Positions 6,005-52,576 of a DNA stretch of 64,000 bases are shown here, one piece after another. Position numbers and translations under genes: made by a program. The stretch spans positions 1 through 64,000 of the forward strand of contig PDIP01000047.1 of the NCBI GenBank assembly GCA_002811645.1. Reading direction: 5' to 3'. Under the pieces are notes generated by a model. The model was not told the DNA's origin and did not search any database. It saw nothing but the letters and a program-made list of their open reading frames with translations. The number at the start of each line of letters is the position of its first letter. Position 1 is the stretch's first letter. This stretch comes from Corallochytrium limacisporum Hawaii. Lineage: Eukaryota; Protista; Pluriformea.

Positions 6005-6395
6005 CTACAGCAAGGTCATCCTCATGGGTCGCCGATCCACATTGTTACTAACTAAGGGGTCAGCTTAATACGAGGGGACAAAGAGGTAGAGATAAACCGA
6101 TTGGGGCGGGTCTTCCTGTGGGGGGGGGGTCCGTAGGCCTGGAATTTCGACATAAGTTGGGTGGCTTTTTGATCTTCGCTCCTTTGTCTCTTTCGCCGGG
6201 TCACATAGACTGCGTACGCATCTGAGACGTCTTTCAGTTCTGTGAAGAGAAACTTCTCTCCCCGTCTTGGTATCTATGATCTGCTTGCCGTTCAAGACCT
6301 GATCCTCGAACATAATAACCACCGCCTTAGGATTGAACCTGTCGCAACGGTTTGGTGGAAATAGAGGGCACTCCAGGGGACCAGGTCTTTAAGTC

Positions 6396-8087
6396 ATGAA
6401 TGGGTTGTTACACACCCGGCTTTCCAGCCGATTCGTTCGCCCGGGAGTGGCGGTCTCCATGGGTTGGTCTTCTTTAATTTGTGGAAGTCTCCGACGAAAC
6501 TACGCCACCGACGAGGCTGAAATTGCGGAACGAAAGAGATCAGTGGAAGGTAGCCTGGACGCCTTTGTAGGCAAAGTATGGTCACGGGTTGTCGAAGCTG
6601 GCGGAGGCACTGCAAGTATGCGTCAGCCAGTGGTATCATTTGACAGTCCGCGTGAATTTTTGTCGCATATATCAGACGACATGCAAACCATTTTGAATGG
6701 CCGAAGAATTAGGTACTCTAGTCACGAATTGAGGGAAAGCGAAATCGAGAAGGAGGGTCTTCGGTCAACATTGGCATCGTTCGCAAAATACGATTCACAA
6801 GCCAATATAGTGCGTTTGATGAGTACCAACATCAGTGACCTTGCGGCACGCCTGAAGAAACAAAGTGTTCCGTATGTTCAGATGATCCTGATCCACGAAC
6901 TTGCGCACGCAGTACAACACCAAAGCTCCACACAGAGTGCCAACTTTTCTTCGGGACCAGCAGATCGCTTCATTGCTAGGGAATGTCTGTGTGAAGGACA
7001 TGCTCTCATTGTGCAGGATGCAGTTGCGAAGGAGATTGGTATTGACGAAGACATACTGGCAAACTTTGAGATGGACATGGGTTTCACGTCTCCGCTAGGA
7101 CATGACAGGGCGTCTCACGATGAGGTCGAACGAGAACTTTTAGAAGTGACTCAGCTGAGCCATCTGAGGAGGAGCATTTACTATTATGGAAAAGCTTATG
7201 CCCTTGCTGTAGGTGCCAAGGCGACTTTGGAAGCCATCAAGAACCCACAGTTGGCTACGTGGGAGATTGTGAAGCGGGGCACCGATAACAACATCATCGA
7301 AGCCCCGATTATGGCCCCACGGGGGCCCGTGTTCTCTCAAGAGTTCCAGTCGGCGTTGGACCTGGTCACTGATGCAGACCTTCTCGACCTTGCAAAGCTG
7401 AGCACCGGGACACTGATGCCTCTTATTCCAGCAGCAGCTGTCCCTGGTGGAAACGGCTCGGGTCTCGTAGCCATTCGTCAGAATGTAGACCATGGTTATA
7501 TCTGCGGATCAGCGGCGCTTGAACGCTATGACAGCATGACAAGGGCGGTATTCTTGGAGAGCATACAAAACTACCAGAAGACCATTGCACAAATCAGTGA
7601 TATACCAATTCCACAACAGCTTAGTATTTCTCTGATTCGCTTGTGGAACAAGGATGAGAACAACGTGGAGTCCTTCATAGGCCTAAAAGAACGGGCTGTG
7701 ACCAAACTAACAGATGAGCTCAGCCACAACGCAGCGTTTGTGACACAGGATCTGTCACTGCCCATCTCTGATGGAATGGCCAGGATTCAACTGAGCATTG
7801 AGAGTAGCGGCCATGAATCTCCGTACGAATTCCCGAGATCGATGATTGTGGATGCGACCTACGTTGTGCCTTTGAAGAGACTAGGCGTAGCTATTGAAAT
7901 TTCACACCAGTACCGCTTTAATTCGAAGGTTGATTCGGATGCAGACTATTCGTATCTGCGGGACAATCAGGAGTCTGTGGTAGATGCCTTCGCCAGGGAA
8001 TACTTGCTGCACGAAGTGCGAAACAGTTCCAACCGCGCTGAACAGCTCATGCCCATTATTCAGAAGATAGGTGGCGTAATTAGCTAG
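6396..8087 (+). CDS. putative zincin-like metallopeptidase (HExxH plus downstream E) with mitochondrial-like presequence
   Basis: 563-aa ORF; ILIHELAHAVQHQ followed by ARECLCEGHA; acid-free Arg/Ser-rich N-terminus ending RRNYA. Confidence 0.75.
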   Translation: MNGLLHTRLSSRFVRPGVAVSMGWSSLICGSLRRNYATDEAEIAERKRSVEGSLDAFVGKVWSRVVEAGGGTASMRQPVVSFDSPREFLSHISDDMQTILNGRRIRYSSHELRESEIEKEGLRSTLASFAKYDSQANIVRLMSTNISDLAARLKKQSVPYVQMILIHELAHAVQHQSSTQSANFSSGPADRFIARECLCEGHALIVQDAVAKEIGIDEDILANFEMDMGFTSPLGHDRASHDEVERELLEVTQLSHLRRSIYYYGKAYALAVGAKATLEAIKNPQLATWEIVKRGTDNNIIEAPIMAPRGPVFSQEFQSALDLVTDADLLDLAKLSTGTLMPLIPAAAVPGGNGSGLVAIRQNVDHGYICGSAALERYDSMTRAVFLESIQNYQKTIAQISDIPIPQQLSISLIRLWNKDENNVESFIGLKERAVTKLTDELSHNAAFVTQDLSLPISDGMARIQLSIESSGHESPYEFPRSMIVDATYVVPLKRLGVAIEISHQYRFNSKVDSDADYSYLRDNQESVVDAFAREYLLHEVRNSSNRAEQLMPIIQKIGGVIS

Positions 8088-8124
8088 TGGATCACTAGCT
8101 GAAGTTAGTACATTATTTATGTTC

Positions 8125-9222
8125 TCATAACTTTCCTGCCGGCAGATGCGTAGGCTTCTGCCGGATGGTATCCACAATGTGTTCTGAGACCGCGTCGACA
8201 TTTTCAAGAGGGAAGAAATGGCTTCCCTCTACTGAGAAATGCTTGACCAATCGAATTCTCGTCGCGATCGCGTCCACAATGTTATGGGGATGGGTATTGG
8301 AGTGGGTACCGCTGAGGAATACCACTGGCGCACCTACTTCGTCCAATTTCTTGTACGTCTCATGACCATTGCCCCCCAGGTAGAAGCTGGCTTCCGTCTC
8401 CGGCAGACACTTTAATGTCACTCCTTTGTTGCCCTCAAGAGGCTTCAAGCCACCTGCTGCATATGCAAGCATCACTTCCGGATGAATGCGTCGAAAGAGC
8501 TTCTTTTGGCTCATCAATTCGGCAAACTTTTCCTTACTTTCAAAGTTAGCACGCCGTGCACGTGCAGTGTTTGCATGTTCCACACCGCTATCATCCACGG
8601 GAAATGTAATGGGATCTGCAGCAACGATAGCACGGAACGTGCCTGGTCTATAAATCTCTGTCTGGAGTGCAAGACATCCGCCCATGCTGTGTCCGTAAGC
8701 AAAGAAAGACTTACCCACCGTACCATGCATTCGGCCTTGCAGAAAGTCTCCAACATAAGTAAGATCCTTTGCGCATATGGCCCAGCCAGATGAGTTATCG
8801 AATCCCATGCTGGGGCTATCCCCGTGACCTCTGATGTCCACCGTCACTGCATCGAGCTCTGGCATCTTCTGCTGCAGAGATCGAATGATGGGGTCGTTGA
8901 TCTTACGGCAAAAGCCCGTGGGATGTATCATGAGCAATGTGGGTCCTTCACTCCGCTTCCCATTCTGTGGCGCATGGTAATCAACTGTAACATATCGGCC
9001 CGTATGATCATCGACGTTGACCTCTTGTGTCCAAGTGGGTTTCAGCAATGAGTCATCAGCAGATTTGAACCCAGTCACTTCCAGCAGGGACATTGACTGA
9101 CGCATCTCTTCTGAATTGTGCATGGTCGCATATGCTCGCGACACCTGGGTGTATGCTCCGAGGTTATTTTTCCAAGAATGCGCTGCACGCAGTAAAGACC
9201 TAATAATCATCGGACAATTCAT
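8125..9222 (-). CDS. alpha/beta hydrolase fold protein
   Basis: HPTGF oxyanion region, DIRGHGDS, nucleophile elbow GHSMGG, catalytic His in GSHFFPLE; start ATG at 9222 or 9210. Confidence 0.9.
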   Translation of the reverse strand: MNCPMIIRSLLRAAHSWKNNLGAYTQVSRAYATMHNSEEMRQSMSLLEVTGFKSADDSLLKPTWTQEVNVDDHTGRYVTVDYHAPQNGKRSEGPTLLMIHPTGFCRKINDPIIRSLQQKMPELDAVTVDIRGHGDSPSMGFDNSSGWAICAKDLTYVGDFLQGRMHGTVGKSFFAYGHSMGGCLALQTEIYRPGTFRAIVAADPITFPVDDSGVEHANTARARRANFESKEKFAELMSQKKLFRRIHPEVMLAYAAGGLKPLEGNKGVTLKCLPETEASFYLGGNGHETYKKLDEVGAPVVFLSGTHSNTHPHNIVDAIATRIRLVKHFSVEGSHFFPLENVDAVSEHIVDTIRQKPTHLPAGKL

Positions 9223-9970
9223 GAACGTAACGACTTTGCTAGGTGCCGAATGATGAACTTCCACCGGCCTGCAACTACAGCTGCTTCGTACGAATACACT
9301 ATGACTACAGCGATCAGTTACACTACATACCTGCTTTTCATTATCGTCTTGAATTCAAGACTAACGCAAGACGTACTACACCATGCCGGAATACAGCACC
9401 ATTTGTGCCCGCTCAAGCCTCATCACGCACCCTCCAAATGACGTGTCGTGACCAGCTCAACCCCTTCATCGCCCGTGGTCAGCTGAGGCGGGAAAAACCC
9501 TCAGCCAACACATACGACATTGGATGATAGTGTGCGATTTATAGAGAGAGCGAACCGGGTGAATTGATAGAATTCTGGAGGGGCTGGGGTTGGCAGGAAG
9601 GGCGTCCCGTGGAAAGGGGGGGGGGTGGGTTTTGGCTGGAGAGGGGAAAATTAGCCTAAAATTAGCTATTGACCTCCGCCACGGCAAGCGTACTCCGGCA
9701 CCGCAGTTTTGATCGAGATGTCATTCTGTGGGTTTTCTCGATATCCTGATAGCACGGGATACCCGAAGTCACCTTTTCTTTGGGTGGGGTTCGGACAGGT
9801 AAGGACGGGCCATACTGTCTGGACGCGGGGAACACCGGTTGGTACGCAGCGGGGAGGAAAGCGAGATCCGAAAAGCAGCCGAAGGGGTGATCAATAGTAT
9901 ACATAGATGATGTCTATTTTCTTAGAGGTCACTACGTGTGCACTGCGAGCATTGACTGTGCCTATTGTAC

Positions 9971-11236: not shown

Positions 11237-13459
11237 GGTTCTACGATTGTCGAACACTTGCTTGATCCCCAGTGTCTGTTCACATTTCGGGAGGTTTGGG
11301 TCTTCGAACAGCTACACGCCTGCCACGGTGTCCAATGACAACTTCCAGAATCTACACATTTGAAATAGATGATCATGAATGGCTTGCCCTCACATGAAAC
11401 TGTGCTCGCCGGGGCAGGCACAAGACACACACTGCTGCGAGCCGCGTTCGGACGCACAATCAGTATGAACCGGCCGGTTCATGTAAGTGCCAGTGACAAG
11501 TCCCCCCCCACGGTGCGAATAAACGCCCAATCCTCCCCTGGGATCAACACTGCGAGCATCGTGGCCCGGAGCATCCGCGACCCGTAAGCTGGCAGCTTCA
11601 CAGTAGTCGAGTCTAATGGATACAGAGGGGAGCTTAGAGTACATGCCGTACACCAGAAAGTCTCGCGTAAAGAGTAAGCCAGCAGTGCCTGAAGTGGCTA
11701 TGGACAGTTCCACTTTGACACGGTTGTCTTTGGACGGACAAACCAATCGCTCGCAATGCCTCCCGAACTGTCCCGGGGATACTCTCATGTCTGTCTGCTG
11801 CAGTACGTAACTTTCTTCCCCGCCTTAGCGACAGGAATACTTGTTTTCTCAAAATTACTTTCACTGTTACACTATACCTGCCGGGACGCGGACACTTTTT
11901 CTGTTAATATTTCCATTTGGATGGGGATCGGTGGCCGATACGAACACCACCAAAACCAACTCCTCCTTTCGACCCAAAGCTACCAGCCGCGCGCTCTCTC
12001 ACTGGGCGCCCTCAGCCTCATCGGACCCGGGCCGGACTCCACCGCTTATCTCCCTGGCTGCAAAATAAACGCTGCCAGAGCCCGGGTTACTTTGCCGCCT
12101 GCATTCCAGGCAGAAATTTCCCATAGTCTTACTATGCAATTTTCTTCTCTCCAGACCTCGGCCCACGAGCACTGTTTTAGGAATTGGGAATCCATAAAAA
12201 AAAAAGAGGTGGTTGAGAAAATAAACGGTGAGGGAGGAAAAGGGGGATGGCACTGGATTGGCCCGGCGATGTTCGCGACGCAAGAGTAAGGTAGTAGTAG
12301 TAGTAGTACTTGCAACCGTTCCTCGGCCAGGCAGCGCCTGTACAGAACAAACGCATTGCATGCGCGGCCGCCGTGTTTTGTCTTTGTCCCCTCTGCCTCA
12401 TGCAGGTTGTATGTTGTCGTATCGATTTGCATATCGAGCCGACATGGTGCTGGGGGCAAGGATTCCGGGCCGGAGATATCATTTGACTCACGGACTGTGT
12501 GTGTGCGCTCCTCTTTGTGTTTTTCGTTGATCGTCCACGGTCTTGGCTGTTCTGGTTCAGGGCCTGTTGAGATGGAGAGGTCCCGAGGATAGCCATCGCA
12601 AGTCTGTCCTCATTTCCGGCAGCTAATTGCTGATCACGCAAGGCGAGACACACACTGGCGCAGTGTGTTGTTGCGACAACACTGCGGCGAGTTTTTCTGC
12701 TTCGAATGGCCTGCTCGTATGTGGGGGGACGCTTTCGGTATTTCCTGACTGGCTTTTGGCGTTGGCTTTTTTGGCAGTTGTACCTCCCCTTCCCCGCCAC
12801 GCGCTTGTTCCCGCCGAATTCAGTACTGCCAGAACCGCGCCAACAATCGCACAGAAAAATCCCACAACGAAAGCGGCTTCGTACCCGTGGTTTCCAGGAT
12901 TTGCTGCTTGCTTAGACTTCTGCTCCCTTTCACTGCAAGGAAACAAGTTTGGTGTTTGTGGTCATGCTAGAGTCCCGGGCGGAGCGGATCCGCGCGATGC
13001 TCAAAATTATCTAATATAGAATATCTACCACGTCTTGCACCCGGAAATTATCAGGACCCTTACCCCCGCCCTGCCGTGTACCGGGTCCTCCCGAAAACAT
13101 CCCCCCGCCCAAAGGGGGGCCAGGGGGGGGGTTTGCGCCGTGAGTGGGTACGGACGGAACTATGCAACACCGCGCGTTGACATCACAGACACAAATCGAC
13201 CGAAACTGATTTCGAAACGGGAAGGGTGTGAAGAGTCGAATACGAACTTTCGTTTCAGCTCGAAACGAGCACCAGACATATAGCAGATGGGGTGTGACTT
13301 TCTCTTCGATGACGCAGTAGTGTGCTTCAAATTTGGACAGGTCATATGCAGGTACTTCCAAAAGCGACCTTGCACGAAAACGAAATCAAAAAATTAGCGT
13401 TACGGTTTCGGTTCGGAATCTAATCGGTTCGTGTTTAGAGTCTCGTGAAGAAGAGAACC

Positions 13460-14746: not shown

Positions 14747-14895
14747 AAAATCTACTAAAACAACCGTATGTTTCCTTCCATGTCCAAAGTTCATGCTCGT
14801 GTGCGTCCAAGGTATGAAGATAGTGTACAGAATGTATATTCTAATCATATGCTATTACAATTACAACAGCCTTGAAAAAGGTATGCAGAAGAGAT

Positions 14896-15423
14896 CTAGA
14901 CGTAGATTCCTTCATCATTTTCTGTTCCTTCGTTTCCTGATCCTTCCTGTGCTGCTGCTGACTCCGGCTCAGTGCGCGAGGTAGGCACATCTGTGTCCAT
15001 CGCTGAGGATGCACTAGGCCCAGCCGCCGGTGCAGTGTGTTCCGACGGAGGCTGGGACACTGATGAGGTACGTCCGAGAATGTCAGATACCATCTTCTTT
15101 CTGATCTCCATGTCCTTCATAATCTTTGCATTTTCTGCCACTGCTTCTTTAAATTCTGGGTCATTCGGATCAGCTTCCATAAGCTCTCTGTTGCTCCGCT
15201 CCAGATGCTGCAGTTGGTTCTTCAAGTGTGCGAATTCCTGCAGCAGCCATTCCCGTGACTGATGTGCAAGTTGTTCATTTGGAACATGATGTGGTTGAGC
15301 CTGCGATCCACATGTTGGCCGTGCATTCTTGAACGAAGTAAAAAAGATACCTGGGCCCAGCTGCACTTCCTGGCCGGGATGGGCGACAGCCTCGTCGACC
15401 TTTTCCTGCAGATTGTTGCTCAT
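14896..15423 (-). CDS. hypothetical coiled-coil protein
   Basis: 175-aa ATG ORF; LKNQLQHLERSNRELM...AVAEN core and EGIYV C-terminus resemble an uncharacterised family I recall from fungi. Confidence 0.75.
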   Translation of the reverse strand: MSNNLQEKVDEAVAHPGQEVQLGPGIFFTSFKNARPTCGSQAQPHHVPNEQLAHQSREWLLQEFAHLKNQLQHLERSNRELMEADPNDPEFKEAVAENAKIMKDMEIRKKMVSDILGRTSSVSQPPSEHTAPAAGPSASSAMDTDVPTSRTEPESAAAQEGSGNEGTENDEGIYV

Positions 15424-19700: not shown

Positions 19701-20554
19701 TTGGAATTTGGAGAGATCTGGTCGTTGCCAGAGCTCCCTTTTCTCTTCAGATACCGTGACCCTTGTCCACGAAGACTAGGTGGACGCAAATTCTGCAACA
19801 AAAAGGTAGACTCTCCGTGATCCCCGTAGTAGTGGTCTTCGAGCGAGTTGGATTTGGCAAGGGTTCCCGCTTCGGACATTGGTTTCATATTCAGCTTTCG
19901 AAATGCTCCCAGTAACAGCGGTTGTGTAGGCAGCTCAACAGTCCGCTCTACCGGTGCATTTGTCGCCTTGTGACCATCAGTGTTTTGGTTGGAGGGCTTT
20001 ACCGACGGCAGTACAACAAACTCTGTACCATCTGAGTCCACCACTGCTTGCGTGCAAGGATGCGTTTCCAATACTTTCACTTTCCCCGGCATACTTGGGG
20101 CCTGTAGAATTTCTCCAGTGCGAGCTATGGAATCTCCAGCACTGAAAAGATCATACAAGTCTTGCGACTGCTCTGAGAGAGCCTTGTACGAGTCGTGGTC
20201 TTGGGCCTCCAAAACAACGACGGTAGCTACTGGCAGAGTGTGCAACGCTGCCATGCTTAGCACATCGCCCCGCTGGAAACCATGGCGCTCCGCAAAATTT
20301 GCAGATAAACTGCAGATTCCCTTTGTACAACTAGAACTATTTGACTTTGCAGTGACCACTAATCTATGTTGAGGTCCCTTTAACGGCCGCAAGAGCACTG
20401 GCCCGACATGAGGCCGCCAACAGGTCAGACTGACATATGCCGGCTCAGTCCCCGCTAACTTACCAAAGACCGCTTTGTAGTCGGTCTCTGATAAGTGTAA
20501 AACGGTTCGATCTGGGTCATCGTTGTCGATGACCAAGGAGAACGAACCTGGCAT
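16754..20554 (-). CDS. PEX6: peroxisomal AAA+ ATPase peroxin 6
   Basis: degenerate D1 (GPMSSGK) and canonical D2 GPPGTGKT, SVKGPELINMYIGQSE, RGKSGDSGGVMDRIVSQLLAEIDG. Confidence 0.95.
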   Translation of the reverse strand: MPGSFSLVIDNDDPDRTVLHLSETDYKAVFGKLAGTEPAYVSLTCWRPHVGPVLLRPLKGPQHRLVVTAKSNSSSCTKGICSLSANFAERHGFQRGDVLSMAALHTLPVATVVVLEAQDHDSYKALSEQSQDLYDLFSAGDSIARTGEILQAPSMPGKVKVLETHPCTQAVVDSDGTEFVVLPSVKPSNQNTDGHKATNAPVERTVELPTQPLLLGAFRKLNMKPMSEAGTLAKSNSLEDHYYGDHGESTFLLQNLRPPSLRGQGSRYLKRKGSSGNDQISPNSNSSSKSGSACDEPGGAHAEYHIMPAPLYEEGYATISTITTGTIWLGWRAMAANDLVTGGYAYLHLGAPMDEKRHVKRLVQVRVWDAPMNDTSAVVSRDVLQQISRPSEPLSWTGKLHALNASRNGGSPVAVADRLVLRQVVTSTYLRASGISTALRQYFASATRLLKKGDVIAIPLVGSSGDGQTMIDFTKDPRTATVTPDLVWFTVNEISGSSDATDGFLLVRADTTRIVQEGISQPKRLPLELYEPLGDFLLPLHSVYRKVAKDAHLKLISEVLAQRDGEKSSGPLDMHDHSESIPFHNMIQLEKVIGMNFHAHSFSGSRANSVSAILIGPMSSGKRAIASAAAAANGVDFLEINCSAFSGLSGAGLDEVLESQFAAARRCAPVVFFMRNVDVLAPAGDDPSGSGDRAAVHVASTLRRLMDHKSEHPMTVIATVRDVEDLSIDCRALFSHEIELKPPKLEEREVMLRKLLDRHPVNLQLSQELTIRKLAELTVGILPLELTMVVEHAFRHAADALMAEYSSDDEIASAAIGRQFGHFLTGPGLCLTSEDVDYGVDRWKGSKKESIGVLKKPNVFWEDIGGMEKVKEEILDLVELPLQRPELFAGGLSRSGVLLYGPPGTGKTLVAKAVATECNLNFLSVKGPELINMYIGQSEKNIRQIFERGRNAAPCVIFFDELDSLAPARGKSGDSGGVMDRIVSQLLAEIDGMDSGEKVFVIGATNRPDLIDPALLRPGRFDRLLYLGVSEDERAALKIVEAQTRKLNVDVDVDLLSIVRRCPKGLTGADYYALCSSAMMQALRRTITEFEAAKAKYAESGGPEDKAPKQPKIILRQEDLEYAVANIKPSVSEADMQRYRDLQKQFLRTDQQQQQSSKPKKQNETALPKIVEEDKKGKGEHKKPPLDTVPKGVHPPASTGNGPGPVNGSTNGNYHHVPANGSEHPNGNGHGHHGKGKQPDKAKMPASKNKGKGKAPLKENANGTNY

Positions 20555-22039
20555 GGCCACGTCTAAGTGCCACCAATTTAGCTTCTATCTATTCTTCCTT
20601 TCTCAAAGAGAACATGGTTTATTTCTATGTCACGCAAATAAAATACCGTGTGTTTTGTCTCTGGTCATACCTCGAAAAACAATACGCACCGATCCAGTAG
20701 CCATGCAAGGCTCCGCTGAAATACCTCAAGTCGGTGGAAGGATCCTACGCGTCTGCACTCACGTAGCGGAGGAAAATGGAGTGGGCGGCGAGAACCCCCA
20801 CCCCCCGGGGGCTCCCTCACTCCGTTGTTCGGGCGCTCCCTGCCACTCTTCTACTTCTCCCTTGCAGTCCCAACTGGGGCCTCCACAAAGGCTTATTATT
20901 GCCCACACCACCCTTCTTCCGCAGGCTCATTTTCGGGATAGCATACTGCGGCTGGGCCCCTTTGCGACGAGGAGGAGGAAGGAAGAAGGCGAGGGGTTGT
21001 TGCGCATGGAGACACGCCCCAGACCTACCCAAAAAATTGATATTATGATGCGGACAAAACTTTGTCCACTATTTTAGTATATATTTTGCGTTATTATGAT
21101 TTGAATGAGGAGTCATTCTACCAGACCTTTTCCAACCGGTGTCGACTCCCCGTCGATCTGCGCAACCGATGCAACTGGGAGTCTCCCCCGGGGGGGGGGC
21201 AGGCAGGGCAGCGAGCCGTCAGTAGCGAATTAGAACTGGGACCGCTGTTGCTAAAAATATCTTCCCCTCCTTCGCCCCGGTTTCCTCTCTTCCCCCCCCC
21301 CCCGGGGGGGTCCCCGGGGCCTCGGGCCGTACTTCTTTTTTTTCTTTTCTTTTCAGCTTCCCACTCCAGCTCGGCTCGGACCCTTGAGAAGGGGGCGGGG
21401 TATATAATTTGGGTCCTGGTAGGCATCATTCCCTTCCCCTCTCCCCTCTCCACCTCTCGCCGAGAGGAATTTGATATACCTACTCCAAGGCGCCCAAAAT
21501 ATACGTTACCCAGGACGAGGTTTGAAAGCGAGAATGAGCCAATATAAATGTAAGGAACCGTGATATACTGAGTGGCCTACATTTACTATGCGCAACGGTG
21601 ACGGTAAGGCCGGACGAGCGCGACAGTTTCTGCGTAATTCGTCGGACTAGTTTCACCCCACCCTTCCTTCCACACACACTCTCTCTCACTGGTCGATGTG
21701 TTCGCTGTGATTTGTTCAACCAGAACCGTCAGCACCTGTGCAAAGTAGGAACCATGCAATAAATCACTTAGGTAGGAGGGCCGGAAGAGCGGTGGTCCGT
21801 GCACCGATGCGTGGACGGGAAGTCACTCTGTTGCAATGGGACAACTGCAAGAGCTTGTATACACCGTCAAGGTAGATCAAAGGCCAGAGTCCGCACCTGG
21901 TGGTCTCAGTTTCTGCTGAAGTGGATTGAAACTTGATAAGTGTGAGTTGTTGAGCTAGAAAGCAGATACTTTACTTGCAAACAGTATGTATCCTTGATCG
22001 ACAGTTTCTTTGAGTAGATCGGATCAAGTAGAATCAATA

Positions 22040-25896: not shown

Positions 25897-26283
25897 GTGA
25901 GATATTTTCTTACCCGGTTGGGTCCGAGCTTATATACATTGTGTATGAACACCGCTGCCATAGGTACCTGCATAGTAAACATACCAAAGGCCTACCCATT
26001 TGTCTTTGCTGCATACATTGTGCACCACAGGCATGTGCCGTGGCAGAGACTCTGCGGACCCCAGCGCTTGACTATACTTATGTGACAGATAGTGGAACGG
26101 CTGGTATACCTTTGGTTAGGTGGCTAGCAGGGACACGCAGTGGCCAATGACAGTTTGGGAACACGTCTTATACAGAAAATTGTATTGCACTATGCACGTA
26201 GGTTATTGATAGGTATAAGTAAGTTATGATCTAGTCAACCTCTAATGTGATTACTAAATCTTTACTCCGGGAATAATAACTAG
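25897..26283 (+). other. candidate 5'UTR intron of RPS25 containing a long fold-back
   Basis: GTGAGA at 25897, nested stems 25916-26236, CTAAT/TACTAAA at 26242-26258, TAG at 26281-26283, ATG at 26293. Confidence 0.5.
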
Positions 26284-26292
26284 GTAGTCAAT

Positions 26293-33406: not shown

Positions 33407-35960
33407 TTACTCGTTGTCGTTGGATTTCAGGATTGAGCTGCGGAAGATTTCGGACATAATCTTGGGTAGGTCTTGAGTGTTCATGCACACAAAGGCGCGG
33501 CCAGTGGGCAACGAACGGCGCAGTTTCTCAGCCTGGTCACCAATAGTACCAATGAAGATGACTACAGCGTTCACCTTAGATTCCGAGTCCATGATTTTGG
33601 TAAGCTGTTGAGGGTGGATGCCGTAGCGGTCTAGGTTGGCATCTGAGATAAGGCACACAAAGGATTCATCTGCCTCTTTCTGTGCCATCTCGTTGATGGA
33701 TTGTTTTAGAGCCTCAACTGTATGATCACCGCTCATGCAGAACTGGGAATGTGCCTGCATCTCTAAGAGGACGTCCATCCTATCTTTCTTGTTCTTGGGC
33801 TCCTTTCCTTCAGGCACGAGGGGGATACTCGGGCTGTCGCCGCTGTGCCCAACAATCTCGTATTTGAATCGGTCACCAGTATCTTGTAGAGACTCCATGA
33901 CCATCAAAGCCGTTTCCATTGCACGGGACAATCGGTTATCCATACCGTTGAAGCGGTACATGGAGCCAGAGCAGTCCATGACCAGGCGCATACGCTTCGG
34001 ATGTTTCATGGTTACGCCGAACTCGGGCTGCTCATACCCACGCCGCTTGTAGATGCTGGACTCTCCGGTCAGACCTTCGATCAAGCGGTTATCATCAAGG
34101 TCACCATCACTCTGGTTCTTGAGCCACACGCGATCCTGACCCTTGGCTTGCAGGGCCTGTACGATGGCACGCAGCTCCTTAGTTTGCTTCTTGATGCCTT
34201 CAGCAAATTGTTCGTACTGGCGATTGTCAAAATCGCTCATCTTGATCTCCTTAAGCCGATCGGCCAAGGCCTTTTCGCCCATGGCGCGGGCTGCGCGGGC
34301 CACCTCTTCAGGCACCTGCGCCTTCTCTTCATCAGAGAGCTGGTATACATCGTGACCAAGATCCAGACGATAAGGACCACCCTTGCCACCGAGACCGGCA
34401 GTGTCACGACCTCCCGTGCCACCCGCCCATTGGTTGCCCCCAACGTGCGGCTTATTCTCCTTATCGACCTTGCCGTGTTTCGGGTCTTTCACATCCAGGC
34501 CAGAGTTACGATCGTGCTCTATGCGCAGCTTGCCATTCTCCTGCATCATCTTTTCCGGGTTGCCCATCATTTGCTGCCACTGCTCCAGGCTTAGCTGGAG
34601 GTTGGGCACGTAAGTTTGCCAGCAGCGGATATGACCATCGATATCAACAGTGGCAAGGTTGCCGCTGGCTAATCCAAGCATGTGGATCACAGGCACCTCA
34701 CGGGCGAGTGCACGGGCGTAATAAGGCCGGTCTACAGGGGGACCACGCGGGACGGCAATGGTCTTGGTAGTAATGCGCACTAGATCGTTGACTTCCATGG
34801 CGCAGACATACGCATGTTTCTGGGACACCACATCTTCGACTTCAGCGCTGACGCGATGGACAACCTGGTTCGTCTTGGACATGAACAGGGAGGAGTGCGG
34901 GTCCATCTCGATGCGGCCTGAACGGGGAATGGAGTGCAGTTCCACTTTCTCATTACTGAAGAGACGCTGCGGCATGCCCTGTGCAATGTAGGCGTAGGAA
35001 TCCGCAGTGGCAAAGGTTTGCACATCAGGGACATTGACTGTGGCTTGCATATCGATCTCACCATTCGGAAGACGGGAAAGTTGCAGAGCCGTGGTGCTCA
35101 TCTGTCCAGAGCTCAGGGCGGAGTACATCTCCTCGTTGGGGAAACCTTCCAAGAGCTGCAAAACCTCAGGAACACTTGTCAGGCTTTCGTCATCACGGCG
35201 GCGATGGAACAACCAGTGTTGATTCTCAGTGTCCCGAATCACCATGTGACCCTGATCAAGGCAGTCAATGCGTTCAGCAGCAAACGGGAGGGTCATGGAG
35301 TATGTGGCACCCTCGGTGAGGTCGACTACTGCCAATTCCTTACTGAACTGGCTATAGATCATGAGGGATCCAGATCCGGGGACAGGTTTGGCTGTGAACA
35401 CCGGTTCGTCCGAATTGTGGCGACCAAAGGCAGCGTTAAAGTGGGAAGCAGCCTCATTGAAGACCCCCTGGCTCACCGAACAACGGCGCATTGTGCCGGC
35501 ACTGGTGTCCAGGAGAAGAAGGGAGTTTTCTTCCGCGTCGTGGATGCAAATGTGGTTGCTCATAATCCCGTCCGGGGCCACCAACCTGAGTGACGGAATG
35601 AAGAACGGCGAAGAATGAGGGAAGAAGTCTTGTAGAGAGTAGGTGGTGAGTTCGCGATGCTTGTCATTTATCTGCCACAAGGTGACAGGCTGGCCGCCGA
35701 GCACATAGAAGGCATCTGTAGCCGACGATGACGCCGCGCTGAGTGGCAGATTGGTGTTGTCGAAGGGTAGGGACCAGCGGTACATTTCTTCAGCAAAACC
35801 GACACCACGGCAGTCTTGGCGGTCAATCTCAGAGGAGGTTTGGCTGACCAAGACCGGCTGGCTCATCTCCAAAGGCTTCTTGATGGCCGGTACCTTAAAG
35901 CTACGGGCCATGGGGCTCAGAGAGACAGTGCCCACTCGAATAGTTGCGGGAAGGTTACGC
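33407..35960 (-). CDS. VWA8: VWA8 exon 2 (C-terminal region and vWA domain)
   Basis: PKHGKVD..N.PHVGGNQWAGGTGGRDTAGLGGKGGPYRLD, MIDAS DCSGSM, HSQFCMSGDHT, SDANLDRYGI. Confidence 0.95.
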
Positions 35961-36496
35961 CTGTGATGAGGAAAAACAATCGGCACAAAGCGAGCAGAGT
36001 CGAGTTAGTAAAATCTACCGCGAAAGACCAGAGTGGCTTGATCGCCAATTACATCGACTACACTTAAACTTGACTATATCACAGAGGTGAACAATCATGT
36101 ACACAACTGGAAGACAATACCATGACAAAGATGACAGTGATGGAGGTCTCGAGAGAACTGATGCCATAAGTGATCGGGAATGCTTGCTTTGCGTCAATGA
36201 GGGATTGTCAGTCTGCGGATGTGCTCGATGATAAGTGAACATGTCCCTGTTCCCGATAACTGTGGCAACCCCGTTCTCATCTTTACACCCACCTGTCAAT
36301 GAATCCTTGTCATCGGCTGTCCTCCTGCTGCAGTCCTTACGACGTTCACATCCTGTGACCTTCGCTCTATTCATGAAATTCATATGATAAGCAGCACCGC
36401 AAACTTTTTCCGTCCCGTGCATCCCCGAAGGCATCAGAGGTCTCCGTCCAGTTGAATGCTGTGTAGCGATTTTGCAAAGGAACAATAAATACTTAC
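35961..36496 (-). other. 536-nt phase-2 spliceosomal intron of VWA8
   Basis: donor GA|GTAAGT at 36496, branch TACTAAC at 36010-36004, polypyrimidine and CAG acceptor at 35961; splicing joins the two ORFs in frame (5817 nt, 1938 aa). Confidence 0.93.
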
Positions 36497-39400
36497 TCAG
36501 GTGCCAGACTAATGTCGTTGGCAGTGGCAACCAAAGGAATGCCATGTTTTACCAGTGTCGAAATGAATACTTCACGGACGTCCTTGTCGTATGCATCAAA
36601 GTCAAATACATTGCGCATGACGACGCCGACGTTCTCGTCGGGAAACTCTTGCAAATGCCGGACGACATTCACCAGCTCACGAGTACTGTAAGGATACTGT
36701 AGGCTTCCCTCGTCCACCATCTTGCGAAGGTCGTCGAATGCCAGGCTGAGTTTCTCTAGGATGTGAGTAGGCACGTTGGGACCATACTTCTTCAGCATGC
36801 TTATCTCAGACGCCAGATCTGGGTTGTCAACAGCGTGGCAACTAAAGATGTCACCCATGGCCGCAAAGAAATCGTTACCCAGGAAGGGGAAACCAGGGCG
36901 GTTTGCCAAAATGAACATGCGGAACTCAGGATGAATGCGAATAACGCCGTGCTCTGGCTCGGTTTGATCTGTGTTGTGGAATGCATGACTTGCATAGATC
37001 TTGCGACCATCACTCAGCAGCATTTCTCCAGACTCGACCAGAGTCTTCAAAATGCAGGTCACGTTCGTGGGGGCTTTATCAGCTTCGTCCACGACCAGAA
37101 TGTGTCCATACGTCACAGCGCGGACCAGTGCACTGTCCTCATATGTCAGAACACCATCCTTGACGCTGGGTTGAAGAGTCAGAGTTTGCACTGTGGTGTC
37201 ACGATGAAGCTGAAGGTACTCACGGGGCTGGTTGAGAACCTGAAGGAAACGATCAACCAGCTTGTTCTTACCGACTCCCTGGTTTCCAATCAGCAGCAGG
37301 TGATCGCCAAGGTTGAAGTCCTGAAGCATTTCCTCGAGGACACGCATATGCTGGTCATTTTCGTAAAACAGGATATCTGGGACAAGGGCAGGGGCAGTAT
37401 TCTGCCGGATCTCCCCAACAGTGCGACCAATCTTAGCATACTTCTTGCCATCCCGGTCCACGTATTCAATGCTTGAAGAATGTCCTGCGTTGCCGCCCAC
37501 AAATGCAGCTGCTTTCTCAGATCCTTTCTTAGTCGGAGCTGGAGTGATGTGCTGTTCCTCCAGAAGCTTCTCCAAAGACTCGCGGGCCATAGAGGGTAGG
37601 AAACGGCTCAAGCAAGCACGATGAATCGACGTGTACAACAGGCCCGCACCCTGGTCCTGGTATGACGCCAGGGCCTTGGATATGCGGATCAGCTGGCGAG
37701 TGGACAGAGACTGGCTGATGGAAGACAATGAAGGGTCCTGTGTCTGACGGATTTCCTGGACAAAGTTCAAAAGCTTGTCGAGTTGCTTTTGAGGCACGTT
37801 CGGCACAGCTCCTTGTAGCACGACCTGTTCCTCAGAGATACTCAATGTGCGCATCTGGTGGTACATGAACATACTTAGAATCTCGCTACTCAACCAGCTT
37901 GTGCCACTACTCGATGGCGGCTCACTCAAAGCGACAATGCGGAACGACGGGTGAATCCTCATAATTCCACGCTCGTTCATTCCCATATCATTCAGACCAT
38001 ATCGGTCTTTGATAGCTTCGTAGCGGTCCGGTCCCATCAGACGCTTACCCTCGAACAGAACAAGTTCCCGATCTTGTACCAGTCGCTGCAAAACGGTGAA
38101 GGTACCGTGGTTGATACGGTGAATCCCGTCTAGAACACACAGAGAACCTTCCAGTGCAGACATGACCAAGGGACTGTATCGCCAATAGGTGTCTCCATTG
38201 GGCTTTGTCGCACGCTGTTGTAGCAAATCACGAGCAGTCATGTCATTGTAGAGCATGACTGGTTCCACATTGTATCCCAAAGTTCCGGCGAAATGGTTGA
38301 CCATTGCACTCTTACCACAACCGCGAGGCCCGATCACAGCAAAGTCGCCAACGGCATGGGTCATGATCATGTCTGCCATCATGCGCTGGTGGAAAGCGGT
38401 CTCAATGAATGGTTCTGCTGCAGGAGGGAAAGTAGAGTTAGGTCCACCTGGAACAGTGATCCCAATGTCTTCGCCGCCCTTTTTGTTCTTGAAGACAACC
38501 TTAGCAGCGCGTTCCTCATTGCCAAGGCGCTGTACATCACCAATAAGATAAGATCCTTCGTTACGAGTGCTCAGACCCAGGGACTGGGCTGCACCCTCTA
38601 CAATATCCCGGTCCTGCTGTCCAACAGTAGATTCAATGGGATACGAGAACCGTGCCAGTTGCAACGGGTCAACGGCCGGGAACTTCTTGGCAACTGTCGC
38701 CAGCAGGTCCATATTGTCCATCGGGAATTCGCTCATGCGTACCATTTGGCTCGTATCAGCAGCCTGGATGGCGCTGGCGAACTTCAGAGCACTCTCAACT
38801 GCCTCTGCACTCTTTGTACCCTGACCTCCAGCGACATTGTGGCACATCTCCAAAAGTTCACCATAAGGTGGGGTCGTAATGTCGCGTGCCTGGAAGCGTG
38901 AGCGAAGTGGAGGATCAAGGGGGTTGCCACGGAAGCGGGGTACGGGCAGGCCCAAAGCAATGACACGGAAACGCTCACTCACACGAACCAGCTTCATGGC
39001 TTCGAGTTCCTTGGGATCGTGATCTTCCAAAAGTTTGTCGAAACGTTCTGGAGCCACTAGGAAGCGACCGTCTTCGAGTCGCATCTCGCGGTTCTCCAGC
39101 AGGTTGTTGAGAATGGGCAGCACATTGCGCTCAGCCTTTTCAATGCCTTCAAGGATGAGTACACGACCTTCCAGAGCAGCCTTCACTGCTGCCTGGTCCA
39201 TATAGTAGGCAGTTGAGGAAATAATCTCACGGCGCTGCTTAATATCAGCCTCTGTGGTATCTCTGCATAAGCTGATATACTCGACTTCACGTTGCGTCAG
39301 CTCACAGAATTTCAGAGCCAAACGTCGTCGGCGAGGGCCCGGAGGACCCACAAGGAAAATATCCTGGCCCAGTAGATCTTTCTGCATCATCCATCGGAGG

Positions 39401-39759
39401 TGCATCAAATCGGTCTGCTTTTCAGAGCCGCTGGCAGCCTCATTTTCAAGGTAACTAATAGGCGCCAGTTCAGGGTATTTTGGTTCACGAATCTCCAGGG
39501 TTACATCACCAATGGACACAGTGCGGGGTGGCTGTCCGTTGCCACCTGAACCACCGTTGGAACCACCGTTGGAACCACCGCCAGCTGCGGACATGCCGCC
39601 TGATGACGATGACAGCATTGCTGATCCCCCAATGACTCCACTACCTGCACCGACACCCGAAGACACATAGGCACGAGTAAGGTTCCCAGTGCTCATCAGC
39701 GGTCGCACCATTGCATTTTGGAGGCGTCGAACCACCCCAGCTGATGCTTGAGCTAGCAT
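36497..39759 (-). CDS. VWA8: VWA8 exon 1 (three MoxR/dynein-related AAA modules, mitochondrial-like presequence)
   Basis: HLRWMMQKDLLGQDIFL, AERNVLPILNNLLENREM, GPRGCGKS, GNQGVGKN, YPYSTRELV. Confidence 0.95.
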
Positions 39760-39868
39760 ATCTGGATTGTCAGTCGTGGCCTGAACCGGCTCGTCGAGAG
39801 CGGTTTGCAGGCTTTGATCTGGCTGTACAGAAATTTTTGAAGGTTTGCTACCGCGTCCTAATCACTAT

Positions 39869-40245
39869 CTGTTCAGATTAGTGCATTGAGTTGGGTTCGA
39901 GATCTATACCCGGTGGCCTCTTCTAAATTAGGAACACCAATCGCACGGTGCTGAACCATTGCTATAAATAGTGTTGCTGAGATTAAGTACCTCAAGTAGG
40001 ACCCATTTGAGTAGCGGTGGTAATGTCCTACTTCGTGCACACTCCTGTGCTCGCTTTAGGACTGAGCAAGCCGGCAAGAATCTATTTCTGCTACGCTCTG
40101 GATCAGTGGAGATGTCCAGTTTCTTCTTGACCACGACACACTTTCGGACTCAACTGATAGTCAGGTGATATGGTCTGCGAAGATCTCAAACCGGCAAGAC
40201 TGCGTCCGCAGAACAGTTCGACAGCCCCCGGCGAGCACCACCCAC
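39869..40245 (-). other. candidate 5'UTR intron of VWA8 containing a long fold-back
   Basis: GTGGGT at 40245, 12-bp closing stem 40192-40181/39905-39894, CACTAAT at 39883-39877, AACAG ending 39869. Confidence 0.5.
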
Positions 40246-42439: not shown

Positions 42440-42474
42440 TAGTACACTATTACACAATTTATTTTCAGACACGC

Positions 42475-45017: not shown

Positions 45018-45018
<1 letters not shown>

Positions 45019-45050
<32 letters not shown>
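45019..45050. repeat. (AC)n microsatellite
   Basis: acacac run. Confidence 0.9.
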
Positions 45051-45052
<2 letters not shown>

Positions 45053-45756
45053 ACAGAGCCCGCTGCTCCTCGTCCTCCTCGCCTCCGCAGGGACGCCGCC
45101 GCGTTTCTTTAGGCTCTTGGCTTCCCCCTTTGTCGGGAACCCCCTCCCTCCCTCCCTCCTTCCCTCCCTCCGGGGGGTGGGACGGGCTTTGCATTTTTGC
45201 TTTCTGCGGATGGCCCCGATTTAGGCGTGTGTACGGTCAGGGAGCAGAGAGGAAGGAAGGGAAACCTCGGGCACAGGAGGATCTCGGGTACATGTGTCTG
45301 ATCAGCAAGTTTGTGCCAAGGGGGAGGCAAACTGCCAAGGCCATGGTTGTTTGAGACGTGTTCTGGATTTCCGTGCAAAGACCTCAGTCAACCCAGTAGC
45401 ACGGCCTTGGAGCGACAGTGGTTCTGGCTTTTTCTTTGAGAAACCGGCTATCAAGTGGTATTTGGAGAGCGGTAACAATCCGAGGTAGTAGTTATGCGGA
45501 GATCCCATTACTCTGTAGTATATACATACATGGCTTCAAGGAAGCCTCTTGAAAGATTGAAAAGACCAAGGTCACCGGGATAGACCATTGGACAGAATTT
45601 TGAACGGAACACGGCGCCTCCAGGGATTGCAACGGAACGTTCAGATTGTTTAGGCGTGGAACCCTCTAAAGAACTGGCTGTCATAGCCAACAGCCGTCCA
45701 TTAATTATTCGTGGGATATCATTCCTTGTTCCACTTACAGTATAGATCCGGCCGAC

Positions 45757-48102: not shown

Positions 48103-48309
48103 ACGTCACGCCCGCGTTCAGTGCAAAGTAGATTCGAAATAGAGAACCCAAATAGAGACACTGCCACAATGGTCACATTTTCTGGATCAAACGTATTTTA
48201 TGTCTTCGAGTTTTGTAAAGGAATAGTAGATTTGGACTCTAATGATGCACAAACAGTTCACCAAGTGTTTCAAAGACGGGACACAATTTACGGATTCTGT
48301 TTTTCTTCT

Positions 48310-50826
48310 TTACGATGCCTCTTCGGTCTTGACTTCTCCACCATTCGCGTTGGCGTTAGGGGCTGACGATTCCGAAGTGGCCATCGCGTTGGCAAACGGA
48401 TGATTGTTGTTGTTGATCTGGTTCAGAATGTCATCCAGGTCAAGGTGTGTGTAGTCATTTTCCTCAACATTGCGGGGCGCCGACTTTTCATTCTCCCCGG
48501 GGGCGACTGAAGCGGGAGTACCAAAGGTCATGTCCCCAAGGTCCGCAGTGATTTGGTTGACAGCATTGGGGATGACCGTCGTGATACCCGTCCGCACGTA
48601 GGAGTTCTTCTCCTGCTCCTTGTTGTCCCCGTCTGTGCTGTAGTAGGGTCCGAAAGCCTCGTCCTTGTCCCGGTTGGGATACAGAGTCCGGAGCTGGGGC
48701 AAATCGTGAACGCGGTCAGCGAGACCACGGATCGCAAGATCCTTGGAGAACCATGGCTGCAAGTGCCAAACCTGCTTCTGACCGTCCTCGTTCTGGCTCA
48801 CCCAGGCCACACTCATGCCACCAATTTCAGAGTCACTGAAACGCAAAATGAACGTACCAGGTTGGCACTGCAAGAGCAGGTCTTGTGCGTGCTGCTTGCC
48901 GATGAAGCCCACAATGAGTCCAGCCTTCCATGTTGCAACCAGATGGCGCTTAACGACCTCTTCAATGCCGTAGAACCATTCCCAGAAGGTGAAGTTGCGG
49001 TTCTGCAGAGGCTCCTTGTTGAACTTATGCCACGTGCAAATGTAATCGGACCCCACTCCAACCTTTTGACCCAAGTAATTCAGACCGTCAGGTTCAATTT
49101 CTCCGCCATTTATGCGCGCAAAATGTTTCGACAAGGCGGCGGCCAAATCGTTCCATGCGACGCTGTCGGGAACCTTCCAGGGCACCCGGGGATCGACGCT
49201 GAAGTGGTTGTCCCAAAGAACGGTGGCCTCAGCATTCGGCAGCTGATTACCGTGCACAATCACAACGATGGGCAGGGACAGCGCGTAGAGCGTCAGCGTG
49301 ATGTCGTTGGGGATGGAGATCGACATGCAGAAACACATGGCGAACTTTTCTTCCGTCACAGTCTCGTCGCTCTTCAAATCACCACGTCGAATCTTTCGGA
49401 GACTCATGTTCTTGAAGTACGCGCGCAGAATCTGGTCGCTCTCGCTGTAGTCCATGACCGATGTGTTGTTGAGAATGTCACCACAGTTGGGCAGGTTCTC
49501 GCCATAGTGGCCCGTACCGGCACCAGTGGCAATGCGGTCTCCTGCCCGACTCCGCTTGCTGCGGGGACCGTTGGCGGCAACGGCAGCGGCAATGTTCCTG
49601 GTGGATGCGCTGGCCAGATCACTGGTCCGCAGTGAAGCAGGAAGCTGCACATCCAGGTTGCTGCCGTCAAAGCCCTCGGGCATGTGTCCGATTTCGGAAA
49701 AGATGGCGGCGGCCTGATATTCATTGACCACCGTAGCGGTGACCTCTGGAGGGTTGACGGGAACGTTCAGTACCTGACTGATGAGGAATCGACAGGACGA
49801 CTGGAACTTGGTCTGCGTCTTCAGTACCTGAGGAGGCTGCTGATCGATCAGGAAAGCCCGCTGAATCAGCTCAATGAGAACGTCCAGAATAAGCTTGCGC
49901 ATGACCAGGATGCGATCCTCGCTCTGGGACATGGGCAGTTGCTGCATCAGCATCTGCACGTGCCGGGTCTGGTTCTTCGTGCTGAACACAATCTCTGCGA
50001 GCTTTTCGAACCAGGTCTGGTATGTGGCAAGCACCTCGTTGCTCTGTTCCTGAGTCAGAGTACCCAGGCGCACCTTTTCACGGAACTGAATGGTCTTGTT
50101 CACCACAACGTGGCGCTGCAGACGCGTAATCAGCTGAATGTTCTCCTCCAGTTTGCCGAGCAGAGTGTGACGGAACTGCAGACAGTTCTTGGCCTTCTGG
50201 CTCACACTCTTCTCAAGCTGCTGGTAGTTCTGCTGCAACTGCTTGTAGTTGGCCTCCTTTTCGGACATTTGCTGCAGAATCTGCTGGTACTTGGCAGCCT
50301 CCTGGTATTGGAAGATAACATCTTCCTGCAATTGGCGGAGCTGCTTAATGTCATTGTCTGCATCCCGAGCTCTGCCCTTTGTGGCCTCAATCTCGTACAT
50401 AATCTTCTCGTGGTCTGCGGTCAAGACGTGCTGTGCGCTAGTCACGGTTGGAGCACCCTTCTCGAGAATCTCCTTCTCGCGCTTCAGGGCATTCGACACG
50501 ACCTGGACAAAGCCCATGGGGTCATTTTCGCACATCTGACGGTAGCTGGTCGCAATTTCTTCCAGCCGCAGACGCAGCAGAAAGCTATCTCCCGGCTGGC
50601 TGGAAATTTGCTGCAGGTACTTGTGCACCTCCTCGAAGAGCTCGCGAACCTTGGTTGCGGCCTGTTGCTGGCCGTCGTCACTGCCGGCCTTGATGGACTC
50701 CCAGTTCTGTTTCTCAAACCATTCCGCAAAGTAGTGCCTCAACTCGATGGGGAATGAGTAACCGTACAGTTCACGCACTGCCGGCATCTGGTGCACCTTC
50801 GACCAGGTTTCTCCCTGGGTCGCCAT
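48310..50826 (-). CDS. STAT: STAT transcription factor (STAT5/6-like)
   Basis: N-domain FPIELRHYFAEW, coiled coil, DNA-binding QPPQVLKTQTKF and SLPIVVIVHGNQ, linker FTFWEWF, SH2 GTFILRFSDSEIGG, candidate phospho-Tyr NSYV. Confidence 0.96.
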   Translation of the reverse strand: MATQGETWSKVHQMPAVRELYGYSFPIELRHYFAEWFEKQNWESIKAGSDDGQQQAATKVRELFEEVHKYLQQISSQPGDSFLLRLRLEEIATSYRQMCENDPMGFVQVVSNALKREKEILEKGAPTVTSAQHVLTADHEKIMYEIEATKGRARDADNDIKQLRQLQEDVIFQYQEAAKYQQILQQMSEKEANYKQLQQNYQQLEKSVSQKAKNCLQFRHTLLGKLEENIQLITRLQRHVVVNKTIQFREKVRLGTLTQEQSNEVLATYQTWFEKLAEIVFSTKNQTRHVQMLMQQLPMSQSEDRILVMRKLILDVLIELIQRAFLIDQQPPQVLKTQTKFQSSCRFLISQVLNVPVNPPEVTATVVNEYQAAAIFSEIGHMPEGFDGSNLDVQLPASLRTSDLASASTRNIAAAVAANGPRSKRSRAGDRIATGAGTGHYGENLPNCGDILNNTSVMDYSESDQILRAYFKNMSLRKIRRGDLKSDETVTEEKFAMCFCMSISIPNDITLTLYALSLPIVVIVHGNQLPNAEATVLWDNHFSVDPRVPWKVPDSVAWNDLAAALSKHFARINGGEIEPDGLNYLGQKVGVGSDYICTWHKFNKEPLQNRNFTFWEWFYGIEEVVKRHLVATWKAGLIVGFIGKQHAQDLLLQCQPGTFILRFSDSEIGGMSVAWVSQNEDGQKQVWHLQPWFSKDLAIRGLADRVHDLPQLRTLYPNRDKDEAFGPYYSTDGDNKEQEKNSYVRTGITTVIPNAVNQITADLGDMTFGTPASVAPGENEKSAPRNVEENDYTHLDLDDILNQINNNNHPFANAMATSESSAPNANANGGEVKTEEAS

Positions 50827-52576
50827 TGTGTCGGTTGAGATTGGCAACTCGACTATTTATTCCTGACTTAAAGTTTCTTTCTTGGTTTATGCGTAGCGCG
50901 CTTCCGATATTCCAATGATTCGATTTGATGTGGTTCAACCTCAGACTGTCCCGTACATATTTTAACCAATGGTGATCGCCCTGAGGAAACCTTTCTGGCT
51001 GGTTGTGAGCCGGTTGTATATCGTAGAGCGAAACTTTGTGGACTATAGTACTTGATTACTGACCAAGTTCACATACCTTTCCCAATTTAGAAACACGATT
51101 CTGGCAGTCTCCGAAAAACTGCCAGGTATGTGTTTACTTTTGGAAAAAACTTTTCCTGTGTCCCTGTACCAGAAGCCCACATTGCTACCAACGGCTGCTT
51201 TGTCGTCGCTGTTTCCAAAGGTTTCCAAAGGTTTCTCTTTCCGGAAAACTCCCGTGCGTGCGTCTGTTGTGTGTGTGTGTGTGCAGTGGTGTGTGTGTGT
51301 GCGTCCACCGCCGAGCGAGAGTGCCTTCAAGTCACAAGGTCCGCTCGTACTGCCTGTGTCTGAGGCCTGTGCCTGGAGGGAGTGGCTCCCGCTTACCTAC
51401 ACAAACACACCGCCGTCCAAAAATAATGTAAAAAAAAATATCTGTTTCTGAGTGCGGCGGCAGCAGCAGCAGTTCCTTCACGGAGCGCGGACGGGCGGCC
51501 GCGCCGCTGGTCGGAGCGGGGCAGGGGGGGACCCACACACACACACTCACACAGAGCGGAGGGGACCGAGAAGGGAAACGAAAATAGAAAGTATACGAAA
51601 AAGAAGAGAGTGGCCCCGCCTCCCCGGGGGGGGATTCCGATGGCCCTGAACCGCAAGACGGAGAGAGAGAGAGTGAGCGCAGAGGAGAGAGGGAGGGTGG
51701 GGTGGGGTGGGTGGGCGCCAGGCGCCAACCTCGGGGATAGTGCCTGACTGCGAGTCTGCGCTTGAGAAGAGTTTTTTTTCTTTTTTGAAAACCGGGGATC
51801 AAAAAAAAACAAACGAGGAACAAAAGAAAAGAAAGGAAGAAGGAGTGCGAGGGTGAGAGACAGTGAGAACAAAATACGAGCAGCCAAACCACCCGCACTC
51901 CGTCCCACCTTCACCTTTCGCTCCCCTCTCCCCTCCGGGAAAAAGGGAGGGGCGGCGGCAGAGGGCAGCGTAGGGAAGGACGCATTGCGAAATAAAAATA
52001 AAAAGAAATAAAGAAAGGAAAGGAAGAAACAATGGACAACCCAGGCAGAGCGAGTGGAGCGGCGGGGAAGGAAGTGAGCACCAAGGAAAAGAGAAAGGGC
52101 ACTAATAAAAAAACACAGAGCGTGCGAGGGAGCGCGAGTGGAGTGAGAGAAACGGGACACAATGAGAGCGAACGAAATGCCACCACCACCACCACCAAAA
52201 AAAAAAAATTGAAAATTGATAGAAATGGGGTCGGCGAAGGAGGGGTTTAAGCTGGCCTGTGGTTGGCGGTTGACCTGTCCCTGATAAGCTAGGCAGAAGA
52301 ACTTGAAAAAAAAAACACCCGAGAGAAAGAGGCAAGACAAGACACAGAGAGAGAGAGAACGAGAGAGAGAGGTACGGAGAGGGTGTAGAGCGTGGAAGCG
52401 TGGCGCAAGCGGGAGACTGGGACTTAACCGCTACCTTCCAACCGCATCAATGGACATACCACCGCGCCGATAGCAAGCCACCCGACTTGAATTGTGAGAA
52501 GAGATTGCGCGCGAGATGACTCCGGGTTCGCCGTTGCAGCCCCTTTCTTCCCGGGGGAACAGCAGCGAATACTTGG

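Follow-up and report, generated by a model that had tools for sequence, protein, structure and literature searches.

Where do the long fold-back RNAs of a nearly intron-free genome reside, in the 5′ leaders of its genes or in the few introns that are left? The question is raised by a stretch of 64,000 nucleotides (nt) of Corallochytrium limacisporum Hawaii (assembly GCA_002811645.1, contig PDIP01000047.1, positions 1–64,000; hereafter the window), in which the gene VWA8 is interrupted by an intron. The genome of this species comprises 24.1 Mb with 0.0 introns per kb of coding sequence (CDS), and SR factors, most of the exon-junction complex and part of nonsense-mediated decay have been lost (PMC5560861). 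A preliminary description of the window had proposed a general layer of structured introns or leaders in 5′ untranslated regions (5′UTRs). According to our predictions, the real class consists of the long introns (about 290–760 nt) that survived intron loss, most of them in housekeeping genes including those of ribosomal proteins, and not of 5′ leaders. Genome-wide searches were carried out on the 24.11-Mb assembly of 286 contigs (BUSCO 83%, incomplete), in which the window is contig C228. Two sequencing runs of 2015 (X3 and X4) are presumed to be RNA, as they show the intergenic gaps of RNA and match the two listed transcriptomes of the species. X4 has single-nucleotide polymorphisms (SNPs) with respect to the assembly and thus represents a second strain.

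VWA8 is encoded on the reverse strand, and its homology was searched exon by exon. The coding part of exon 1 (36497–39759) comprises three AAA_5 modules and ends with CCT GA in front of a phase-2 intron. Exon 2 (33407–35960) encodes the C-terminal half with the vWA domain. The spliceosomal intron between them (35961–36496, 536 nt) is present as a GT..AG joint in run X4. It has the 5′ splice site GTAAGTAT (36489–36496), a branch point TACTAAC located by signal search (36004–36010) and a pyrimidine tract with the 3′ CAG (35961–36003). The signals GTAAGT, TACTAAC and CAG together with the spliced RNA joint identify it as a major (U2-type) spliceosomal intron. U2 snRNA is present in the genome. 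All other CDSs of the window are intronless, and 35961–36496 is the sole GTAAGT..TACTAAC..YAG intron of the window. Signal search and RNA joint thus bear out the earlier statement that the CDSs are essentially intronless and that VWA8 holds the only CDS intron.

The intron is predicted to form an irregular rod of about 280 nt (36078–36359, reverse strand). The 5′ arm (36359–36251) and the 3′ arm (36179–36078) are connected by a small branched head, and about 85 pairs between 36359 and 36078 have a probability above 0.7. The fold of 36068–36362 has a z-score of -4.85 on the sense strand and of -2.56 on the antisense strand. The duplex statistic of the rod has a z-score of -6.2, and a comparison of the rod with block shuffles gives p 0.005. 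The fold-back described earlier for this intron is therefore upheld. Additionally, a purine-rich segment (36394–36411, reverse strand) is predicted to form a 13-bp pairing (p 0.93–0.95) with the pyrimidine tract (35970–35986) in front of the 3′ AG. RNA of the second strain covers the first 228 nt of the intron and shows no differences. A genome search, which can miss copies, revealed no second copy of the intron. Neither the rod nor the leaders of the window gave an Rfam covariance-model match.

Branch-point pattern searches together with 80 loci yielded about 50 introns with the donors GTA[A/G]GT or GTATGT, some of the calls being uncertain. Branch-point patterns are rarer in the genome than reversed controls (46 vs 197). 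The lengths of the introns are bimodal, with about 27 introns of 80–131 nt, a few near 200 nt and a long class of about 290–760 nt. From their translations we take the genes with long introns to be those of beta-tubulin, calmodulin, EF2, RPL3, RPL5, RPL7A, RPL12, RPL18A, RPL27A, RPLP0, RPS12 and RPS15A. Twelve of 15 long introns have z-scores of -2 or below against 40-nt block shuffles (median -2.6). On the sense strand the excess stability amounts to -3.3 kcal/mol per 100 nt, more than on the antisense strand (-1.7 kcal/mol per 100 nt; p 0.025). A strand-neutral rod score gives a mean z of +2.65 for the long introns and of -0.10 for the leaders. The halves of one intron pair better with each other (76) than halves taken from different introns (50 ± 9), a comparison in which the diagonal is slightly favoured by the centre optimisation. 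Among 16 long introns only short hits at chance level were found, in agreement with the earlier remark that the copies share no primary sequence.

The strongest rod (z -5.3) belongs to the RPL7A intron (L095:666-1249), which directly follows the ATG and was part of a later batch. Given the donor that we infer for this intron, the rod pairs two internal GTAAGT donors. The intron is also a candidate for autoregulation as in yeast RPL7B. Stems of the long introns often start 23–34 nt past the donor and finish 37–58 nt short of the branch A. By prediction, six of 14 long introns (RPS12 intron 1, calmodulin, RPL3, RPLP0, RPL27A and RPL12) conform to the zipper geometry of PMC12350175, whereas 1.6 are expected.

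The leaders differ from the long introns. The preliminary description had reported fold-backs upstream of at least six genes, with weaker ones at three more. In a first scan of 300-nt fold windows on both strands with a regression null, the named leaders mostly had |z| below 2 and the top-scoring windows fell elsewhere. These windows (z about -4; 8001–8400 and 20101–20800) cover the zincin/hydrolase 3′ ends and the start of PEX6 and lie outside the named leaders. The test set comprised the 24 leaders of the window, and 40-nt block shuffles were used, which preserve the local composition. The mean z of the leaders is +0.13, compared with -0.24 for CDS windows, so there is no excess structure. 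The nine named leaders have z-scores of +0.4, +0.2, +0.4, +2.1, +0.3, -2.8 (VWA8), +0.6, +0.6 and -2.3 (STAT). Only two of the 24 leaders (VWA8 and STAT) reach -2 or below, which is near chance. A best-subwindow test gave the same null picture apart from these two, which are borderline (p about 0.04, uncorrected). Rod-specific statistics for the sense-strand leaders are likewise null, with the exception of the VWA8 duplex score (-3.0).

For the individual segments in question the z-scores are not above chance at RPS25 (25897–26283, forward strand, z -0.44), FLOT2 (13140–13438, forward strand, z -0.01) and CUL1 (45357–45756, forward strand, z -0.40). The STAT segment (50827–51076, reverse strand) has a z-score of -0.42, and wider windows are borderline (-2.3 to -2.8). 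The VWA8 segment (39869–40245, reverse strand) is borderline as well (z -1.33). It has no sense-strand preference and lies mostly upstream of the RNA coverage. In this leader the antisense fold is stronger than the sense fold (z -3.4 vs -2.1). The value of -3.4 on the strand opposite the leader (39765–40162, forward strand) is one among many tests. It had also been stated that most non-Watson-Crick pairs are G-U on the sense strand. This argument is circular because any pairing search that rewards G-U has the excess built in, and such a search also yields a G-U excess in null leaders, for the most part on whichever strand is read. With strand-neutral scoring the share of G-U among G-U plus A-C is 55% for the leaders and 54% for shuffles (p 0.37), and the asymmetry disappears.

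A junction test with RNA covered the VWA8 leader only. The RNA contigs define a 5′UTR of VWA8 at 39760–39938 (reverse strand), with contig ends at 39931 and 39938 and no splice joint, although contig ends do not fix the start of transcription. TATTTATA is located at 39970–39963, just upstream of the RNA contigs, which end 25–32 nt downstream of it. In both strains the contigs are unbroken to the ATG over about 175 nt. They cross the predicted branch and AG near 39869, in front of which the stem had been thought to close. The contigs start downstream of most of the fold, an outcome that the preliminary description itself had named as refuting its proposal. An intron in the VWA8 leader is therefore rejected. 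The leaders lack a strict TACTAAC followed by a pyrimidine tract, a combination that the called introns have. A possible 65-nt RPS25 5′UTR intron (26219–26283, forward strand; GTAAGT, imperfect branch TACTAAA, TAG) is below the 80-nt minimum of the called introns and lies outside the claimed rod. The proposed genome-wide control layer of leaders should be dropped, and the class of fold-backs is not real for leaders.

Long introns with zipper stems or long stems are known from Saccharomyces cerevisiae (PMC12350175; RPS17B), including RPL7B (PMC12311795). In both organisms the genome is poor in introns, intron lengths are bimodal, ribosomal-protein genes carry long introns and the branch point is a strict TACTAAC. 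In both, stems between donor and branch point have no common primary sequence. C. limacisporum, on the other hand, is a holozoan lineage with independent intron loss, so the likeness would be convergent. Furthermore, several of its stems are near-continuous rods of 250–400 nt, which are known here by prediction, and the VWA8 rod starts 137 nt past the donor and corresponds to a long stem rather than a zipper. The analogy with yeast stems, drawn earlier for leaders and introns alike, thus holds for true introns across the genome and fails for the leaders. Convergence on structured long introns of the yeast type is the best reading of these predictions. No report of structured introns in C. limacisporum was found in the open-access literature.

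By analogy with yeast, the stems probably make the long introns more compact and mask their cryptic sites, to the benefit of a spliceosome that is short of helper proteins. Stems forming on the pre-mRNA would shorten the span from donor to branch and bury cryptic donors. Compaction and donor hiding would then help a spliceosome in which SR and exon-junction factors are few to define long introns. Several observations weigh against this interpretation. The VWA8 rod fails the strict yeast zipper geometry, its base being at intron positions 138 and 419 with a linker of about 210 nt. The introns of EF2, RPS15A and one Rab-like gene have no excess structure, and the introns have only a marginal G-U excess (0.64 vs 0.60, p 0.06). 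The effective donor-to-branch distance is not below that of shuffles and was dropped as evidence. Each z-score is based on 12–14 shuffles and is noisy (-3.6 and -7.7 for VWA8 in two runs), and intron L073 was retained after its score was known. The structure evidence is wholly thermodynamic; no intron of a relative was found for covariation. A relative's VWA8 locus was not found in JGI metagenomes, a search among proteins gave no close homologue, and the metagenome runs X5 and X6 yielded only scraps.

Other origins of the stems have to be considered. It is very unlikely that structured 5′UTR introns or leaders act in front of many genes as a general layer of control. The borderline VWA8 and STAT leaders would fit such a layer, as would the RPS25 GTAAGT, which lies 74 nt before the ATG with an imperfect branch motif and an AG behind it. 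Against it, none of the tests gave a signal for seven of the nine named leaders, the number of leaders at -2 or below is near chance without G-U asymmetry, and the leader of VWA8 lacks a splice joint and, for the most part, RNA coverage. It is also unlikely, although less so, that the stems serve as processing scaffolds for intron-encoded non-coding RNAs (hosts of small nucleolar RNAs (snoRNAs) with an Rnt1-like RNase III) or as stable lariats and not as splicing aids. RPS12 intron 1 contains a SNORD51-like C/D snoRNA (L008:555-638, reverse strand, E 2e-7) and the RPL5 intron an snR60/Z15-like one (L036:625-723, reverse strand, E 2e-5). Further C/D snoRNA hits lie near other intron calls, and there is one weak RNase III open reading frame (ORF; C176:159124). 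These two long introns resemble known hosts of intron-encoded C/D snoRNAs, whereas most rod-bearing introns, including that of VWA8, contain no snoRNA. The strongest rods (VWA8, RPL7A, RPLP0, RPL27A and calmodulin) have neither an Rfam match nor a C/D box pair, and some tests place the two snoRNA-bearing introns among the weaker folders.

A similarly low probability is assigned to a neutral origin of the rods, as relics of ancient inverted duplications or of decayed insertions resembling miniature inverted-repeat transposable elements. Fold-back insertions would both lengthen introns and create self-complementarity. That the antisense strand carries part of the signal and that the G-U excess is marginal is compatible with them. 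The sense-strand preference (p 0.025) and the positions of the stems relative to donor (23–34 nt) and branch A (37–58 nt) argue against such relics. No common sequence or second copy was found, both searches being limited in reach. Moreover, intergenic leaders should take up insertions too, yet they show no excess. Precursors of microRNAs or small interfering RNAs, already mentioned as an alternative in the preliminary description, are highly improbable. The hairpins are long and imperfect, and microRNAs occur in ichthyosporean relatives (PMC6206976). The genome search revealed no Piwi/Argonaute domain, an absence that is unproven at 83% BUSCO, and a single weak RNase III match is present. The best reading is still that of convergent, yeast-type structured long introns.

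At two further loci, L078 (contig C239; two weak C/D snoRNA hits) and L018 (contig C52; three tandem introns, one weak hit), there are signals of introns but no long ORF. Both are probably non-coding snoRNA host genes.

The VWA8 intron raises the additional question why it was kept. Its position and phase are identical in the genomes of sea urchin and leech, where it is in phase 2, interrupts the same codon and also reads GAG TAA. From this sequence comparison, it is an old holozoan intron. When the C. limacisporum intron is read through, GAG TAA results and the protein stops at ISLAPE, which gives an AAA-only short form. The database protein for this locus (P0009) likewise ends at ISLAPE. Long and short isoforms (VWA8a and VWA8b) are known from mammals and C. 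elegans (PMC8517341, PMC7297598), with 1804 and 974 amino acids in the latter (PMC7297598). Fifteen short animal proteins in the database (924–1039 amino acids) end at the aligned LAKE and two more diverge there, while long forms continue. The read-through Glu and stop thus fall at the end point of many short forms from vertebrates and invertebrates. Two further contigs, one of fish-like RNA and one from a metatranscriptome, run into the VWA8 intron and then stop.

Both C. limacisporum RNA runs contain intron sequence as well. A contig of X3 crosses the intron unbroken. The X4 run has a branch contig (depth 98, compared with 72 for the spliced form) that enters the intron and ends at 36269. 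This contig (36269–36525, reverse strand) stops inside the 5′ arm of the rod and marks a possible intronic 3′ end, which is a candidate only. The contigs in both runs are consistent with abundant unspliced or intron-terminated RNA.

The intron may tentatively be regarded as an isoform switch that predates animals, was kept because unspliced or intron-terminated RNA gives an AAA-only protein, and has its ratio of short to long form set by the rod; we give this proposal clearly less than an even chance. In such a switch, unspliced VWA8 RNA would be translated into a protein that resembles animal VWA8b in stopping behind the AAA modules, and the output of two isoforms would be the reason for the survival of the intron. 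The rod would set the ratio of spliced to unspliced RNA. The rod would also permit the pairing of 36411–36394 with the pyrimidine tract, which would be a hindrance to splicing, and with termination near 36269 the 3′ arm of the rod would be lost. Unlike in animals, the host is unicellular, the intron has 536 nt with a rod compared with 1.6–3.6 kb, and the short protein is a prediction only. The nematode gene that was checked has other intron positions. The proposal is further weakened by VWA8 genes of four fungi, one apusozoan and one nematode without an intron at or near this site; those of Mortierella, Synchytrium, Obelidium, Thecamonas and Bursaphelenchus have none at the site itself. A Glu-stop follows from any GA|GTAA junction. 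Pre-mRNA or DNA could also yield the intron-containing contigs, which show neither end nor level. No report of VWA8 intronic polyadenylation was found in the open-access literature.

If the stems are confirmed, the intron design of budding yeast has arisen independently a second time, in another intron-poor lineage that is closely related to animals. The shared design would comprise a strict branch point, two length classes and structured long introns in ribosomal-protein genes. Such convergence would argue that the design follows from the loss of introns and SR proteins. The VWA8 intron, for its part, would represent a rare alternative isoform that is common to a unicellular holozoan and animals and is retained in a nearly intron-free genome. 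A shared isoform would suggest a function for the little-studied short VWA8b.

Some further features of the window were noted. In the second strain, a 12-nt deletion is present at 39548 in the N-terminal part of VWA8, and there are 11 SNPs in 5.9 kb. A full animal-type STAT is among the proteins of the window, for which EukProt is the only database with entries. An orphan ORF of 256 amino acids (5189–5959, reverse strand) corresponds to the C-terminus of a dynein heavy chain. Broken Dynein_C pieces are located on contigs C180 and C285 and an intact dynein ORF of 4907 amino acids on C184. The orphan ORF matches the expectation for decaying flagellar dyneins and points to such decay. Trans-splicing was considered for this ORF and for branch-point sites without a nearby donor and was rejected, as nothing was found in its support and the broken dynein pieces indicate decaying genes. 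A possible 117-nt intron (514–630, forward strand) with GTATGT, CACTAAC, a pyrimidine-rich tract and TAG is located upstream of COQ2. The palindromic TCAGTACTG(A) is found at 3576, 12820, 40343 and 44367, always in intergenic positions. With six strand matches compared with 0.41 expected, it is a candidate promoter element.

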